DNA from: Octopus sinensis
Taxonomy: Eukaryota
Length of the DNA stretch: 35,438 bases
Assembly: GCF_006345805.1 (NCBI RefSeq)
Contig: NW_021831736.1
Location: 1-35,438 of the forward strand
Direction: 5' to 3'
The notes beneath the pieces are model-generated. The model saw nothing but the letters and a program-made list of their open reading frames with translations. It had not been told where the DNA came from and ran no database searches. Below are positions 8,400-32,723 of the stretch, in pieces. The position numbers and the translations under genes were made by a program. Numbering within the stretch: the first letter of the stretch is position 1; each line of letters opens with the position of its first letter.

Positions 8400-8600
8400 A
8401 CGGAGATGTACTCGCATAGCAAGTAATTTGATCTGAGATCGTGTGCTGAAACGAAAACAATTGCAGCGTGGAAGGTGTTTATAAGCCATTTAAGAAACAC
8501 ACAAAAGCCGTTCGATTCACTTCAACATTTAAGTTTAATTTGTCAAAATATTTTCGTCGCTAAAATCCGCGACCTGTTCACCGACAAAGTCCGTGCTGCA
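8400..8600 (-). mobile_element. ~200-bp HHR-bearing cassette flanked by (TA)n on both sides (solo PLE pLTR or retrozyme-like unit)
   Basis: Unique sequence bounded by TA tracts, with an HHR fold at its 5' end on the - strand. Confidence 0.6.
8539..8588 (-). ncRNA. Minimal type I hammerhead ribozyme, G3-C8 variant with an extra G after A9
   Basis: - strand: UUUGUCG | GUGAACA | G | GUCGC-GGAUUUUA-GCGAC | GAAA-AUAU-UU | UGACAAA. Stem I 7 bp, stem II 5 bp, palindromic AAUAUU stem III. Confidence 0.75.
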
Positions 8601-8678
8601 TATATATATATATATATATATATATATATATATATACACGAAAGAAGGTTTGAAAATGCTATTTTAAAAGATGTTTAT

Positions 8679-8723
8679 TTACTTTACCGGTTTCACTCTT
8701 TGGAAAAAGATTGTCAAAAGTAA
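8679..8723 (-). ncRNA. Minimal type I hammerhead ribozyme, U3-A8 variant
   Basis: - strand: UUACUU | UUGACAA | UCUUU-UUCC-AAAGA-GU | GAAA-CCGG-UA | AAGUAA. Stem I 6 bp, palindromic ACCGGU stem III, GUA cleavage triplet; 2 unpaired nt (GU) before G12. Confidence 0.65.
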
Positions 8724-8769
8724 CATGTAGAAGTTTGGTTGCGTTAATTATTGGTTGTTACAAATTGCT

Positions 8770-9187
8770 ACATTACATATATACAGTCTTTGGTAACAAG
8801 GACATGTTAAGGACATAAAAAAGTTTAACAAGTTCCTTAAAATATTGGGCACAAAAGATTACAACATAAATAATCATTCTCAAGAACATGTTTATGATAG
8901 TTTCCAGAGGGAATTATTAAAAAGTTCAGTGGGATATTGGTATTGGTATTGTATCTGTATATTCAAACACGCACAGAATATTGGTTGACACAGAGTACTA
9001 CAATACATATATATACATTCTTTGGTGACTAGAGCATGTTGAGAACATAAAAAAGTTTAACAAGTTCATTGAAATATTGGGCACAAAAGATTACAACAAA
9101 TATATTAAACATTCTCAAGATAATTTCCAGAAGGAATTATTAAAAAGTTCAGTGGAATATTGGTATACACGCACAGAATATTATGAG
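8770..9187. repeat. Imperfect tandem duplication, period ~230 bp
   Basis: AAAGTTTAACAAGTTC...AAATATTGGGCACAAAAGATTACAACA...GAATTATTAAAAAGTTCAGTGG occurs twice. Confidence 0.9.
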
Positions 9188-9347
9188 TTCAAAAAGGTTT
9201 ACATTATAATAGTAGGGAAGCTAAAACTGACCTGTCCACCATGTTAACGTAAAAGGATATTATCTATTTCAAGGGACACTGTAGGTGTGTTTGGGTGGGG
9301 GGATGGAGGATTAATGTGGAACTGAAAAAAATTTATCCTTTTTGTCT

Positions 9348-9568
9348 CTGGCAGAAACGTTAGCATGCCGAGCGAAATGCGTAGCCGTATTTCGTCTGCC
9401 GTTACGTTCTCAATTCTAATTCCGCTGAGGTCGACTTTGCCTTTCATCCCCTCGGGGTCGATAAATAAAGTACCAGTTTCGCACTGGGGTCGATGTAATC
9501 GACTTAATCCGTTTGTCTGTCCTTGTTTGTCCCCTCTGTGTTTAGCCCCTTGTGGGTAGTAAAGAACT
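9348..9568 (+). mobile_element. SINE family B
   Basis: CTGGCAGAAACGTTAGC...GCCTTTCATCCCCTCGGGGTCGATAAA...GTGGGTAGTAAAGAA. Confidence 0.9.
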
Positions 9569-28784: not shown

Positions 28785-28825
28785 CCCCTTAACTGTAATA
28801 TATATATACAACCTATACCATATGT

Positions 28826-28978
28826 CGGTGTGTTTACGTCCCCGTAACTTAGCAGTTCGGAAAAAGAGACCAACAAAATATTAGGCTTGGAAAAAAAAAA
28901 ACGATTAAGTGCTGGGGTCGATTTATTCAACCAAAATTTCTTCAAGGTGGTGGAACAAGTAAAAGATAAAAGATAAAG
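28826..28978 (+). mobile_element. SINE family A, 3' fragment
   Basis: GGTGTGTTTACGTCCCCGTAACTTAGCAGTTCGG...GGGGTCGATTT...ACAAGTAAAAGA. Confidence 0.75.
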
Positions 28979-29639
28979 GAATTATATCTGGCCTGTTAGG
29001 CCTACTTTTCATATCCACATTTTACAGAGGTTTTGACAGGAATACTCAGTATTCTTTGATATTTTGAGTAATTATGAGATACATATCGGTATTATATTAT
29101 TTTGTATTTTCGTTTTTAAGGGTACCCTTTATACGAGTTGCATTGTGTATAAAATTTAGGCTACGACATTGTGTCTCATGAGTAGACAGCACCATGATGA
29201 CATTTTTGGACAGCTGTTCATGATGTAAGTGATACTTTTCGATGTTAATTCCGGAGACTCTGTATCGGTTGTCACACTTAATGATTTATCTTCATACCTG
29301 TAGTTTTTCTGCAGCGATTATTTCATTATCCCCTGGTTCCTTATTGCAACAGCATATCCTTTAACATGATGCATAACACCATGTAGAACACCAGATACAA
29401 CACTTGACAGAACACAAATGAGAACATGAAGCACAACAACGATTAGTGTTCACACATCTTGTTAAAAAAAAAGCAAAACTAACTCTTCTGAAATTAAATG
29501 TTTCAATCTATTAAACATTTTGTTTCTCCCCTCTTTTAGGTTGATTAATATATTGGTTTCTGATGGTGGTGATCTAGCAAAACTATATCACACAGGCTGG
29601 GATTACTAACAGGATTAATATCATATCAACCATATTGGT

Positions 29640-29858
29640 TTCAAATATTGGCGCAAGGTCAGCTAATTCGGGGGAGGGGGTAAGTCAATTAAGTCGACTC
29701 CAGTGATATTCAGCTGGTATTTATTTTGTCGATCCCGAAAGGATGAAAGGCAAAGTCGATCTCAGCTTAATTGGAATTTGATCGCAGAACGTAAGCACGG
29801 ACGAAGTATCGCAAAGCATTTCGCCTGTCGTGCTAACGATTCTACCAGCTCGCTGCCT
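29640..29858 (-). mobile_element. SINE family B-related copy (another partial + copy near 30075-30230)
   Basis: Core CCCGAAAGGATGAAAGGCAAAGTCGA and head ACCAGCTCGCTGCC. Confidence 0.75.
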
Positions 29859-31454
29859 TTATCTTATCCATTATATTGTCATCCACCCAAATACTTAATA
29901 CTTCATCCCAGATCTTTTTTATTACAATTCCAGTCACAACTGGGGAGGATGAGGGTGAATAAAAATTGCGTTAAAAACAAAATTTTCGTACCGGAAAATG
30001 GATTTTTACATTAGTATAAGGCTACAACTTTACAGGGGAGGAGTGTGGTTAAATGAATTGAATGGTAGTATGGTACTAGGATGAGCTACTTTGCGTCATT
30101 TCTCCAGCTCTTTACGTTCTGAGTTCAATTTCCGCTGAAGTCGATTTTGCCTTCCATTCTTCCGGGGTTGATAAAATCGACTTGTTTCCTACCCTTAAAA
30201 CTGGTGACATTGTGCCAAAGTTTGAAAGAATTATTGGCACTTATTTTATTGGTTACTGAGAGACCACAAAACTTAATACAAGTAACGCCAGATATTGAGT
30301 TTATAATACGAGTGCATTAATGCCAGGATAAAATGATGAATAAAAACATTGTAAATGAAAGGTGTCAGATATCTCAGTCAATTAGTTACTGATACGAAAA
30401 GAATGGAAGCGGTGAGTCGTTGTTGTTGTTATTGTTTAACTACTCCAGTTCAATCCTGATCGTGCAAACTTGTGATTAATGATATTCCTGCCGCGACCAT
30501 CTTAATCTTTTCAAAAGCATATAGGACTGCATTATTTAATATGCCATTTTTTAAGATTATTTTTATTTAATACGGTGAAGAATTATATACAGCGAGAAAT
30601 ATGATCGCTATTTCTAACCACGTAGAGTCTCCCTTGTTGGCTCCTGAAAGACAGAAGCAGCTAGAGGTAGTGGCAAAGATGGGAGAGAAGAGCGAGAAAA
30701 CAAAACAAGTCGGTTAGACTCGTTATATGTCTCTAAGTAGGCTGGATTCGATGACAGCAGACGACAGCTTGGAACTCAGTGACACAAGATTGTAAAATAA
30801 CAGTAACAACACGAACAAAATCAACTTAATTGTAAGACACAGAACCATGGGTGGTGACAGTGAAATAATCACTTCTGTTATCATTGATTTATTTTCAAAA
30901 TATACTTAAACTGGGCATTCTATAGCTACATCAACCTCCTTTTCAGTACACTCTGGAGTCCCAATGTATGGAACGCCGTACGTAATATTTTAAATGTTTA
31001 AAAGGCATCAACACATTTACACACGTAAAGATTAACATCATCACGCAAAGAAAACCTCTGATAAATAAACATTATGTTTATGCGCGCGCGTACACACACA
31101 CAGACACACACACACAAACATGCATAAATACACTCACAAACATGCATAAACGCATAAACTCACCCACAATCAAACACTCACACACGCACGCATACACGCA
31201 CACGCACAATTATATAGATAACTATTCGTGGAAATACTTTTTGCAAAACGATTAGCGAGAAGACTCCAAAGTGAAAAAAAAAAGATAAAAAATAAAAGTA
31301 GTTATCTGATTTACTGCGATAAGATAGGTATGAAAAGCATCAGTTAACGCGAAGAGACACTTGAAAATATATTTGAAGCACACATTTGAAATAATGATAT
31401 GCATATATATATATATATATATATATATATATATATTATATATATATATTATAT

Positions 31455-32723
31455 ATATAATAATAATAAATATTAGGGAATATATCCAAATTTACAGGGA
31501 AAAAATCAGATTTAGGATTAAATCAATTTTTATAGTAAAATATTTAAAATATTATTTGAGACAAAACCACTATTTTGCAAAACAAACAAGGAAAGACTTA
31601 ATCAATACATAAAAATTTAAATAGTCAAAAAAACCGCCACTACAATCGTTTCTTGTCTTGATCGACAATCTTCAGGTGGACTTCCATCTAAAAAATCAAA
31701 ATTTTAAATATAAAAATAATACTTTTAAATAATTAAAGTATAAATGAAAAATATAAGTATATATCCATATATAACCTAATATAATCCATATCGAAAATAT
31801 AGACTAATACACGAATTCCTAAAAAAAAAAAAACCAAAAAAAAAAACCCATGATAAAACAAAAACTCTTAAAAAACATATAACGATACAAATCTCCCTTT
31901 GCTAAACTCTATAACAAACCTATAAAGTAAACCCCCTAACCTAAACATTCACAACAAATACACAAACGTAAACCACAGACTCACGACTTATACACAATTA
32001 CCTATACTAACTTATAAACCTCAATATACACCAAAACCCACTCCTCACCACACAGACAAATTACACATACATCCCAAAACCTAAATAACAAACCCATATA
32101 CACATTCACACAAAAAACCCACACTCACACGAAACACTCACACAAAAAAGATACATATACTACCACACATATACGCCTATACATACTCCTAAACTCGAAC
32201 ATTATACAACAATACTTACACACCCACAAAAAACATTATATACATTTATTGAGCTTTAACTCACCTTAGCATCTCTAACAAAACAACTTGCAGTAACCCA
32301 ATCCCATCTCTATGCCTACCTCACTACTACACTATTCCATTCACATTCCAAGCAACGCTAGTCCACCACCCGGTGATTCACGTGGGCAAACGAACACCAC
32401 TCAAAAAATTATGAATGAAACAATGTAAAAAAATAACCAACACCTAAAATAGACAAAATACCACGAATTACCAAAAAAACCATGATAAACCAAAACTCAT
32501 AAAAGCATATAACGATAAATCTCCCTTTGCTAAACCCTATATCAAACTTATAGCAATCCCCCTAACTAAACATTCACACACAAAAACCCACACGTAAACC
32601 ACAGACCCAAGACATATACACAAACCTATACTAACTTATAAACCTCAATATACACCAAAAAACCACTCCCTCCCCACCAGAAACAAATTAACACAATACA
32701 TCCCAATCCTAAATAACAATCAT
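31455..32723 (-). mobile_element. Probable Penelope-like element arm: G/T-rich on the HHR strand, ~630-bp internal tandem duplication, ending in (TA)n
   Basis: HHR ~180 nt from a (TA)n tract; 31849-32095 is repeated at 32481-32720. No RT or endonuclease motif seen, so the family call is inferred from the HHR context. Confidence 0.5.
31637..31679 (-). ncRNA. Canonical minimal type I hammerhead ribozyme
   Basis: - strand: CCAC | CUGAAGA | UUGUC-GAUCAA-GACAA | GAAA-CGAUUG-UA | GUGG. All core nucleotides intact; GUA triplet; predicted cleavage between 31641 and 31640. Confidence 0.9.

Follow-up and report, generated by a model that had tools for sequence, protein, structure and literature searches.

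Hammerhead motifs in an Octopus sinensis contig

We analysed a stretch of 35,438 nucleotides from Octopus sinensis (contig NW_021831736.1, assembly GCF_006345805.1), the whole of which is called the window below. It is AT-rich, eukaryote-like DNA, dense in microsatellites (97 rows in Tandem Repeats Finder) and with repeats resembling short interspersed elements (SINEs). It carries five hammerhead ribozyme (HHR) motifs together with two coding relics from Penelope-like elements (PLEs): one reverse transcriptase (RT) relic at 20120-20296 on the plus strand, and a relic of the C-terminal GIY-YIG endonuclease at 21857-22108 on the minus strand. Four of the motifs, numbered 1 to 4, had been listed in an earlier, sequence-only reading of the window; motif 5 was absent from that set.

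The motifs were searched on both strands with a relaxed type-I descriptor. It accepted any Watson-Crick pair between positions 3 and 8, and required U4 G5 A6, A9 followed by 0-1 nt, helix II of at least 4 bp, G12 A13 A14, A15.1 and U16.1 around 2-8 nt, N17 other than G (H17), and helix I of at least 4 bp. The palindromic loop 3 is a published hallmark and was not used for finding. The relaxed descriptor returned exactly four motifs and no others, and these agreed with the sequence-only reading in position, 3-8 pair and stem III sequence. Motif 5 (21071-21111, minus strand) was recovered by a looser descriptor that allowed up to 2 extra nt after A9 and a helix II of at least 3 bp. When one core mismatch was tolerated, no additional motif appeared in the window.

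All five motifs were far beyond chance. With a palindromic loop 3 required, 3000 block-wise dinucleotide shuffles gave rates per window of 0.0003 for C-G, 0.0007 for G-C, 0.0023 for U-A and 0.0007 for A-U cores, figures that are optimistic because the descriptor was shaped with the motifs already in view. On shuffled windows the looser descriptor gave 0.035 U-A and 0.017 G-C matches per window, and two U-A matches or three non-canonical matches were seen in 0 of 1000 shuffles. The plain core pattern, CUGANGA with GAAA within 30 nt, matched once against 1.3 expected and is uninformative without the stems.

Sequence and fold of the five motifs

Every fixed core base (U4 G5 A6, A9, G12 A13 A14, A15.1-U16.1 and H17) was present in all five motifs, which share the type-I topology, with 4-7 bp in helix I and 4-5 bp in helix II. 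The 3-8 pair was C-G in two motifs, U-A in two and G-C in one, and the strict published consensus (C3, G8) describes motifs 3 and 4 only, with U3-A8 accepted as a variant (PMC4209133, PMC3088659).

Motif 1 (8539-8588, minus strand) has the G3-C8 core, UUUGUCG-GUGAACA-G-GUCGC(GGAUUUUA)GCGAC-GAAA-AUAU-U-U-UGACAAA, with stem III AAUAUU, a 7-bp helix I and predicted cleavage after the U at 8546. Motif 2 (8679-8723, minus strand) has a U3-A8 core, UUACUU-UUGACAA-U-CUUUU(UCCA)AAGAG-U-GAAA-CCGG-U-A-AAGUAA, stem III ACCGGU and predicted cleavage after the A at 8685. Exact look-up of a reading frame spanning these two motifs returned no record. Motif 3 (10846-10921, plus strand) is canonical, CUGAUGA ... 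GAAA-CAGCUG-U-A, with helix I GUCU/AGGC and stem III ACAGCUGU. Its core halves are 48 nt apart, and its helix II, GGGA/UCCC beside a C.A mismatch, closes a 39-nt loop. Motif 4 (31637-31679, minus strand) is also canonical, CCAC-CUGAAGA-UUGUC(GAUCAA)GACAA-GAAA-CGAUUG-U-A-GUGG, with stem III ACGAUUGU and predicted cleavage after the A at 31641. Motif 5 has the second U3-A8 core, UACCA-UUGAUAA-AC-AAAA(AAUA)UUUU-GAAA-CUAG-U-U-UGGUG, with loop CUAG and predicted cleavage after the U at 21076.

Loop 3 was therefore AUAU, CCGG, CAGCUG, CGAUUG and CUAG in motifs 1 to 5, and CGAUUG is palindromic only when G.U pairs are counted. The hammerhead fold was the minimum-energy or centroid fold in motifs 1, 4 (centroid) and 5 and was partially formed in motif 2, while helix I of motif 3 was excepted. 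Motif 1 folded at -13.9 kcal/mol. Motifs 2, 3 and 5 have an extra nucleotide after A9 but a 10.1-11.1 pair that is C-G, G-C or A-U, and motif 4 can be read either way. External PLE hammerheads from molluscs and cephalopods show the same departures from the pattern of a bulge with G10.1-C11.1.

Comparison of the motifs with PLE hammerheads

Two covariance models were used to search the window: R1, trained solely on eight external hammerheads of mollusc/cephalopod type and run with speed filters off, and R2, built from PLE hammerheads of other hosts. With R1, motif 2 ranked first (33.9 bits, E = 3.4e-5) and motif 5 second (23.0 bits, E = 0.006), followed by motif 4 at rank 3 (14.0 bits, E = 0.44) and motif 1 at rank 8 (10.7 bits, E = 2.1), neither significant. 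With R2, motif 5 was found at E = 0.03, and motif 4 (E = 0.29, again rank 3) and motif 1 (E = 0.57) were not significant. Motif 3 was reported by neither model in the whole window. The families Hammerhead_1, Hammerhead_3, Hammerhead_II, HH9 and HH10 of Rfam gave no match in the whole window at the gathering score, and Rfam returned only microsatellite-driven look-alikes of microRNAs.

Nucleotide searches pointed the same way for two of the motifs. Motif 5 matched the hammerhead and tail of an Argonauta hians PLE by blastn (E = 1.5e-9 with the TA tract included, E = 0.003 with low-complexity filtering), and motif 2 matched the hammerhead of a fetched PLE locus, L070, which is its nearest fetched relative (blastn E = 0.013). 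When motif 2 was aligned end to end with the 3' end of another locus, L067, the result was marginal (p = 0.03). In plain local alignment the motif regions did not match the Argonauta 3' end significantly, and blastn matched motif 5 only. These comparisons confirmed motifs 2 and 5 as members of a defined PLE hammerhead lineage. The placement of motifs 1, 3 and 4 rests on descriptor statistics and context.

A further candidate was seen at 16537-16582 on the minus strand, AAUAU-CUGAGGA-A-GAAAC(CUAGCU)GUUUC-UU-GCAA-UAUA-U-A. It is possibly a sixth, decayed hammerhead, in which GCAA replaces GAAA, two extra U are present and no TA tract follows downstream. It ranked second and fourth with the two covariance models, short of significance (E = 0.23 and 0.88).

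Hammerhead, tail and (TA)n at the 3' end

For each of the five motifs, a (TA)n run of at least 6 units begins 43-188 nt downstream on the motif's own strand. Such a run lies within 200 nt of 13.8% of the window positions, so that the joint chance of this placement is about 5e-5 if the motifs are independent. The nearness to simple repeats noticed in the sequence-only reading thus stood and became more specific.

The tail of motif 1 (8399-8538, minus strand) is 140 nt long and leads into an (AT)n tract at 8189-8398, the presumed insertion target, as delimited by Tandem Repeats Finder. The tail of motif 2 (8637-8678, minus strand, 42 nt) is followed by a (TA)18 tract at 8600-8636, which ends 12 nt upstream of motif 1. 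Motif 1 is thus carried on a 200-nt insert flanked by two TA tracts, in which no protein domains were found. Behind motif 3, a tail at 10922-10999 on the plus strand runs into a TA-rich microsatellite, (TAATA)n/(AT)n, that extends to 11143. Motif 4 is followed on the minus strand by 31403-31636, a tail of about 177 nt and then (AT)n at 31403-31459, and motif 5 by a 74-nt tail at 20997-21070 (minus strand) and a (TA)n tract at 20956-20996. The motif flanks showed no significant similarity to one another once the TA repeat was excluded (p = 0.08 for the tails of motifs 1 and 4).

Intact or near-intact PLEs of Argonauta hians and of other marine-animal contigs, which were fetched by way of RT-endonuclease (RT-EN) proteins, share this 3' end. 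In locus L004, two inverted RT-EN frames are followed about 95 nt on by CUGAAGA-G-CCGC(AACA)GCGG-U-GAAA-CGCG-U-A, a tail of about 35 nt and (TA)n. Locus L065, from Argonauta hians, has two inverted copies with the hammerhead UCU-CUGAUGA-U-ACAAA(ACAA)UUUGU-U-GAAA-CUAG-U-U-AGA, each with a tail about 70 nt long that leads into (TA)n. L067, L070 and L071 end in the same order of hammerhead, tail and (TA)n. An insertion bias of PLEs for (TA)n, a short 3' tail and inverted copies have been described (PMC8557442). The homing to microsatellites proposed in the sequence-only reading is therefore right but known, and its word "cassettes" is misleading, as the motifs are better described as the 3' ends of truncated or decayed PLE copies than as a system of their own.

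PLE coding relics

The RT relic was detected by tblastn with RT and GIY-YIG proteins (E down to 4e-13), and the endonuclease relic likewise (E down to 2e-18). When the window was searched back with RT-EN proteins, only these two relics matched. A search by phmmer with the GIY-YIG-like reading frame (21857-22141, minus strand) found 349 relatives, many of which are the C-terminus of proteins of 600-750 aa in which an RT domain precedes GIY-YIG (Pfam). This is the architecture of endonuclease-positive PLEs, and the consensus of the relatives has a cysteine motif upstream of GIY-YIG. The closest named relatives of the endonuclease relic are Argonauta hians proteins with 64% and 55% identity, which fits an octopod as the source. 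A word-indexed protein search with the endonuclease relic gave no match; the relatives surfaced by exhaustive search.

The full architecture is present in the homologues, while in the window RT and GIY-YIG are separate, short and broken relics on opposite strands. The RT relic therefore comes from a different copy than the endonuclease relic, which belongs with motif 5, located 745 nt downstream of it on the same strand. The PLE relics that the sequence-only reading had placed near its motifs are real, but they lie 9-11 kb from motifs 1-4. Motif 2 is tied to a PLE 3' end by homology. Motifs 1, 3 and 4 have no PLE coding relic adjoining, so their placement with PLEs comes only from their architecture and from (TA)n downstream.

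Between the end of the endonuclease frame and the hammerhead (21517-21679, minus strand), repeated ACGTCA or TGACGTCA sites, a CRE/ATF-like palindrome, were observed. The same sites occur in the 3' regions of L004, L005, L006, L011, L068, L071 and L072, and they might be part of a terminal-repeat promoter.

Sixty of the fetched PLE loci (L005-L064, on GTDB contigs) lie within assemblies labelled as bacterial metagenome genomes, among them SUP05, Campylobacteraceae, Poribacteria and Thiodiazotropha. One 'Stappiaceae' assembly has 'chromosome' records of up to 970 kb, across which dozens of PLE reverse transcriptase copies are spread. These loci are most likely contigs of host animals that were mis-binned.

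Covariation of the core pair 3-8

Pairs were counted in a model-fitted alignment of 11 distinct members of the lineage. The 3-8 pair was C-G in six, A-U in three and U-A in two, and no member had it unpaired. Over the whole structure, 94% of the cells of this alignment were paired, compared with 65% after shuffling and 28-41% with slid partners, and the covariation score was 0.85 compared with 0.24 in shuffles, none of 500 of which reached it. The variation at 3-8 is genuine covariation.

Relatives of each U3-A8 motif carry other pairs. L070 and L072 have C3-G8 with loop 3 CCGG as in motif 2, and L068, L069 and L071 have A3-U8 (AUGAUUA or AUGAAUA) with the same loop. L068 and L069 come from different metagenomes, and their hammerheads are identical save for N17 while their flanks are about 80% identical. 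The Argonauta element that matches motif 5 has a C3-G8 hammerhead. In addition, the 10-mer GCATTTTCAA occurs twice in the window, only in the tails of motif 2 (8650-8659) and motif 5 (21010-21019). It is also present in the tail of L068, and in a near-identical form in L069 and L071. Both U3-A8 motifs are thus assigned, on sequence grounds, to one PLE hammerhead lineage, whose other members are C3-G8 or A3-U8.

Natural hammerheads with U3-A8 have been described, and swapped 3-8 pairs were active in vitro (PMC3088659); about 1300 PLE-type motifs of Schistosoma mansoni carry U3-A8 (PMC4209133). The U3-A8 covariation has therefore been on record since 2011 and 2014. No description of A3-U8 (L068, L069 and L071) or G3-C8 (motif 1) as natural variants was found in the literature consulted, where G3-C8 was found only as a laboratory variant (PMC3884650), and the A3-U8 relatives and the single G3-C8 may be new details. 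Among 26 distinct motifs tallied from the window and the fetched loci, 8 carry a pair other than C3-G8.

In a different host, L008 carries a further U3-A8 candidate (2158-2196, plus strand; UUGAUAA, loop CAUG) about 185 nt downstream of the PLE frame. In L009, which is related to L008, the hammerhead is C3-G8, its loop is UGCA and its helix II counts only 2 bp.

Interpretation of the motifs as 3' ends of PLE copies

We consider, with a probability of about 0.8, that the five motifs are minimal type-I hammerheads at the 3' ends of PLE copies that are 5'-truncated or decayed, and that their 3-8 pair flips with pairing kept. Each copy would end in the hammerhead, a tail of 43-188 nt and (TA)n. 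The TA tract would be the site cut by the GIY-YIG endonuclease of the element at insertion, and this would account for the TA repeat that each motif has downstream of it on the same strand. The hammerhead of a live element would lie within a terminal repeat, where it is thought to trim tandem or read-through transcripts to unit length. With only 1-2 pairs in helix III and a palindromic loop, the active form, as inferred from published work, would be a double hammerhead of two copies. Positions 3 and 8 would be Watson-Crick paired in the active fold, so that the pair could flip without loss of pairing. It appears to have flipped repeatedly in this lineage between C-G, A-U and U-A, and motif 1 may add G-C. 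The copies that the window carries are probably dead remnants, stemming from several different PLE families.

Minimal type-I PLE hammerheads with a palindromic stem III had been recognised in the sequence-only reading, and this assignment stood. The palindromic short helix III of minimal PLE hammerheads and their action as dimers have been published (PMC4209133, PMC6765202). The proposal that cleavage needs two like copies follows from that work and is not new.

Several observations weigh against this interpretation. The Rfam hammerhead models left motifs 1-4 unreported even at E up to 10 on three short slices, a miss that we infer to arise because the library models do not cover such very short helices. 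No relative of motifs 1, 3 and 4 was detected, and their flanks had no significant similarity to one another or to the fetched PLEs. In motif 3, helix II is unusually long and helix I lies outside the minimum-energy fold. Helix II of motif 5 consists of four A-U pairs only (-3.8 kcal/mol), and this copy may be inactive owing to so weak a helix. The model fitting of the 11-member alignment favours the structure, yet the 3-8 pair can be read straight from the sequences. Self-cleavage of the window motifs, more efficient as dimers, is a prediction.

Motif 1 as a hammerhead or a look-alike

The status of motif 1 was weighed separately. It is alone among the 26 tallied motifs in having G3-C8, and the sequence-only reading, which had proposed a diversified core, had itself named singleton cores as telling against that idea. 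Of that proposal, the variation of a 3-8 pair that stays paired was borne out as true covariation, the U3-A8 form was already known, and the G3-C8 form is a singleton here. Neither covariance model placed motif 1 significantly, the descriptor was shaped after the motifs were seen, and scans of viral and metagenome collections for its pattern gave only chance matches in GC-rich bacterial DNA. No relative of motif 1 was found in these scans or by blastn to the fetched PLEs. The corresponding scan for the motif 4 pattern in the same collections also gave chance matches only, in coding or GC-rich bacterial DNA.

A chance resemblance must nevertheless account for an expectation of only 0.0007-0.017 per window by descriptor, and for three published hallmarks of minimal PLE hammerheads that the descriptor did not demand: the unpaired nucleotide after A9, the G10.1-C11.1 pair and the palindromic loop 3 (PMC4209133). 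The minimum-energy fold of motif 1 is the hammerhead fold (z = -2.9), and the motif lies on an insert between TA tracts, with a TA run downstream on its own strand as for the other four. We regard motif 1 as probably a true hammerhead derivative, and a look-alike as an unlikely reading that still deserves some weight.

Possible mutational decay of the core

The non-canonical cores could also be products of mutational decay instead of variants under selection. The two changes needed, C3 to U and G8 to A, are transitions, which are the most frequent substitutions where a genome is AT-rich, and the copies in the window are probably dead relics with short, broken coding remnants. Helix II of motif 5 is degraded relative to that of the Argonauta element, which has five pairs including a C-G, and motifs 2 and 5, folded as monomers, do not exceed shuffles in stability. 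However, the changes in both U-A motifs fell on exactly the two pairing partners and spared G5, G12 and a loop 3 rich in G/C (CCGG, CUAG). With about 8 G/C sites, a change of the 3-8 pair is one of 28 two-site outcomes, and it occurred twice. No half-changed motif was present in the window with one core mismatch allowed, and no lineage member has 3-8 unpaired. Moreover, A3-U8 requires transversions, yet three elements keep it, and their helices I and II show compensatory changes. Decay as the source of the non-canonical cores is therefore rather unlikely.

Stem III as a proposed self-recognition key

The sequence-only reading gave each PLE family a self-recognition key in the form of its own palindromic stem III, and cleavage would then require a pair of copies from one family. 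In the window, loop 3 is indeed different in all five motifs, and the dimer requirement of hammerheads with a short helix III is established (PMC4209133, PMC6765202). Predicted self-duplexes of helix III were -0.2, -8.3, -11.1 and -5.8 kcal/mol for motifs 1 to 4, and mixed pairs among these motifs were all -2.7 kcal/mol or weaker, so that the self-duplexes of motifs 2, 3 and 4 exceed every mixed pair.

That different palindromes do not cross-pair is, however, trivial, and with 16 four-base palindromes possible, five distinct ones say little. The loops are also shared: CCGG is common to six elements (motif 2, L068, L069, L070, L071 and L072) that carry three different 3-8 pairs and differing helices I, CUAG is common to motif 5, L065 and L021, and CAUG to L067 and L008. 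AAUAUU, at -0.2 kcal/mol, would hardly hold a duplex. The 3-8 pair forms within one strand and thus cannot serve as a key.

In the double-hammerhead geometry, as derived from its topology, the cleavage-site strand and the 3' half of helix I would be supplied by the partner copy. Helix I would then form between copies and already limit pairing to like copies whatever loop 3 is, and any sequence difference would give partner specificity with no evolved key needed. A self-recognition key as an adaptation is not supported, and we judge this explanation improbable.

Relation to retrozymes and other known systems

It is very improbable that the motifs belong to retrozymes without long terminal repeats (non-LTR retrozymes), in which short units in tandem each bear a hammerhead and are expressed as circular RNAs. 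In favour of this reading, a derivation of animal retrozymes from the terminal repeats of PLEs has been proposed (bioRxiv 10.64898/2026.07.22.740005), and tandem repeats lie just upstream of motifs 2, 3, 4 and 5 (units of 230 bp, 23 bp, about 630 bp and 24 bp). Against it, no repeat unit contains a hammerhead, the similarity between the motif 2 region and the 230-bp units is not significant, the 630-bp repeats part from the copy bearing motif 4 about 150 nt ahead of the motif, and each motif is present once. A first alignment had hinted at motif 2 as a third 230-bp unit, and this similarity was not significant (p = 0.30). The known non-LTR retrozymes of animals (Cervera and de la Pena 2020, PMC7229834) resemble the window motifs in having type-I hammerheads in AT-rich animal repeats of likely PLE origin; they are tandem units of about 170-400 bp each with a hammerhead, whereas here single motifs adjoin tandem repeats without hammerheads.

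The interpretation as PLE 3' ends agrees best with the minimal PLE hammerheads described by Cervera and de la Pena (2014, PMC4209133) and by Lunse et al. (2017, as cited in PMC6765202). Shared traits are the type-I topology, a helix I of 3-7 bp, an extra nucleotide between A9 and helix II (with motif 4 readable either way), a helix III of 1-2 pairs with a palindromic loop of 4-6 nt, a probable position in the terminal repeat or at the 3' end of a PLE, U3-A8 covariation and high sequence diversity between families. In contrast to those, motifs 2-5 and their mollusc and cephalopod relatives have one nucleotide flanking helix II on each side (U.U, C.A, G.U, U-A) and not just a 5' bulge, and G10.1-C11.1 is often replaced.

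Canonical endonuclease-positive PLEs, in which the linker is CX2-5CxxC (Neptune-like; Arkhipova 2006; Craig et al. 2021, PMC8557442), are alike in the RT and C-terminal GIY-YIG of the homologues, in the cysteine motif that the relatives' consensus has upstream of GIY-YIG, in (TA)n insertion with a short tail, and in the inverted head-to-head copies of L004 and L065. The window differs from them in having short reading-frame relics only. In the natural U3-A8 hammerheads of Perreault et al. (2011, PMC3088659), the C3-G8 tertiary pair is likewise swapped for another Watson-Crick pair with the core otherwise intact; those are scattered cases, whereas here three pair types occur in one related lineage with a common loop 3 and tail motif.

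Other features of the window

Short tandem repeats were observed directly upstream of three hammerheads, with 230-bp units at 8749-9166 (motif 2), 23-bp units at 10770-10832 (motif 3) and 24-bp units at 21137-21214 (motif 5). Fetched elements also have upstream tandem repeats, with units of about 37 bp in L006 (1660-1760) and about 300 bp in L070 (5230-5650), and this arrangement may recur among these PLE 3' regions. A G/T-rich tandem unit of about 630 bp was found at 31796-32726 (minus strand) and 34598-35438 (plus strand), and also at 34112-34256, in arrays that are inverted head-to-head with 82-92% identity. The minus-strand array leads into the motif 4 sequence. The window ends within the plus-strand array, so that any hammerhead of this array is out of view. 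These head-to-head arrays resemble the inverted copies described for PLEs.

The SINE-like repeat is present in many copies in both orientations with 72-94% identity (4223-6088, 6733-7382, 9348-9578, 27932-28784 and 29675-29864), which often abut (AC)n or (TATG)n tracts. An integrase core domain of retroviral type (Pfam rve, E = 8e-11) survives as a relic in the region of 16067-16435 (minus strand) and 17231-17503 (plus strand), and near it a Tc1/mariner-like transposase fragment was noticed by eye and was unconfirmed by Pfam. Neither is related to PLEs.

Implications for PLE hammerheads

The lineage described here is a clean natural case of covariation of the C3-G8 tertiary pair within one related set of retrotransposon ribozymes, with three pair types and none unpaired. 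The 3' ends of cephalopod-type PLEs are now linked to the layout of hammerhead, tail and (TA)n. This adds detail to known biology and opens no new question. Searches that fix C3 and G8, as well as the Rfam models, miss a sizeable share of these motifs, and counts of mollusc PLE hammerheads are therefore likely too low. Only tentatively can it be proposed that, in the PLE hammerheads of molluscs and cephalopods, each of the four Watson-Crick combinations at 3-8 is a natural variant with activity. If this were true, the 3-8 pair of a minimal, dimer-dependent hammerhead would be selected only for pairing, and the lineage would represent a natural mutagenesis series.

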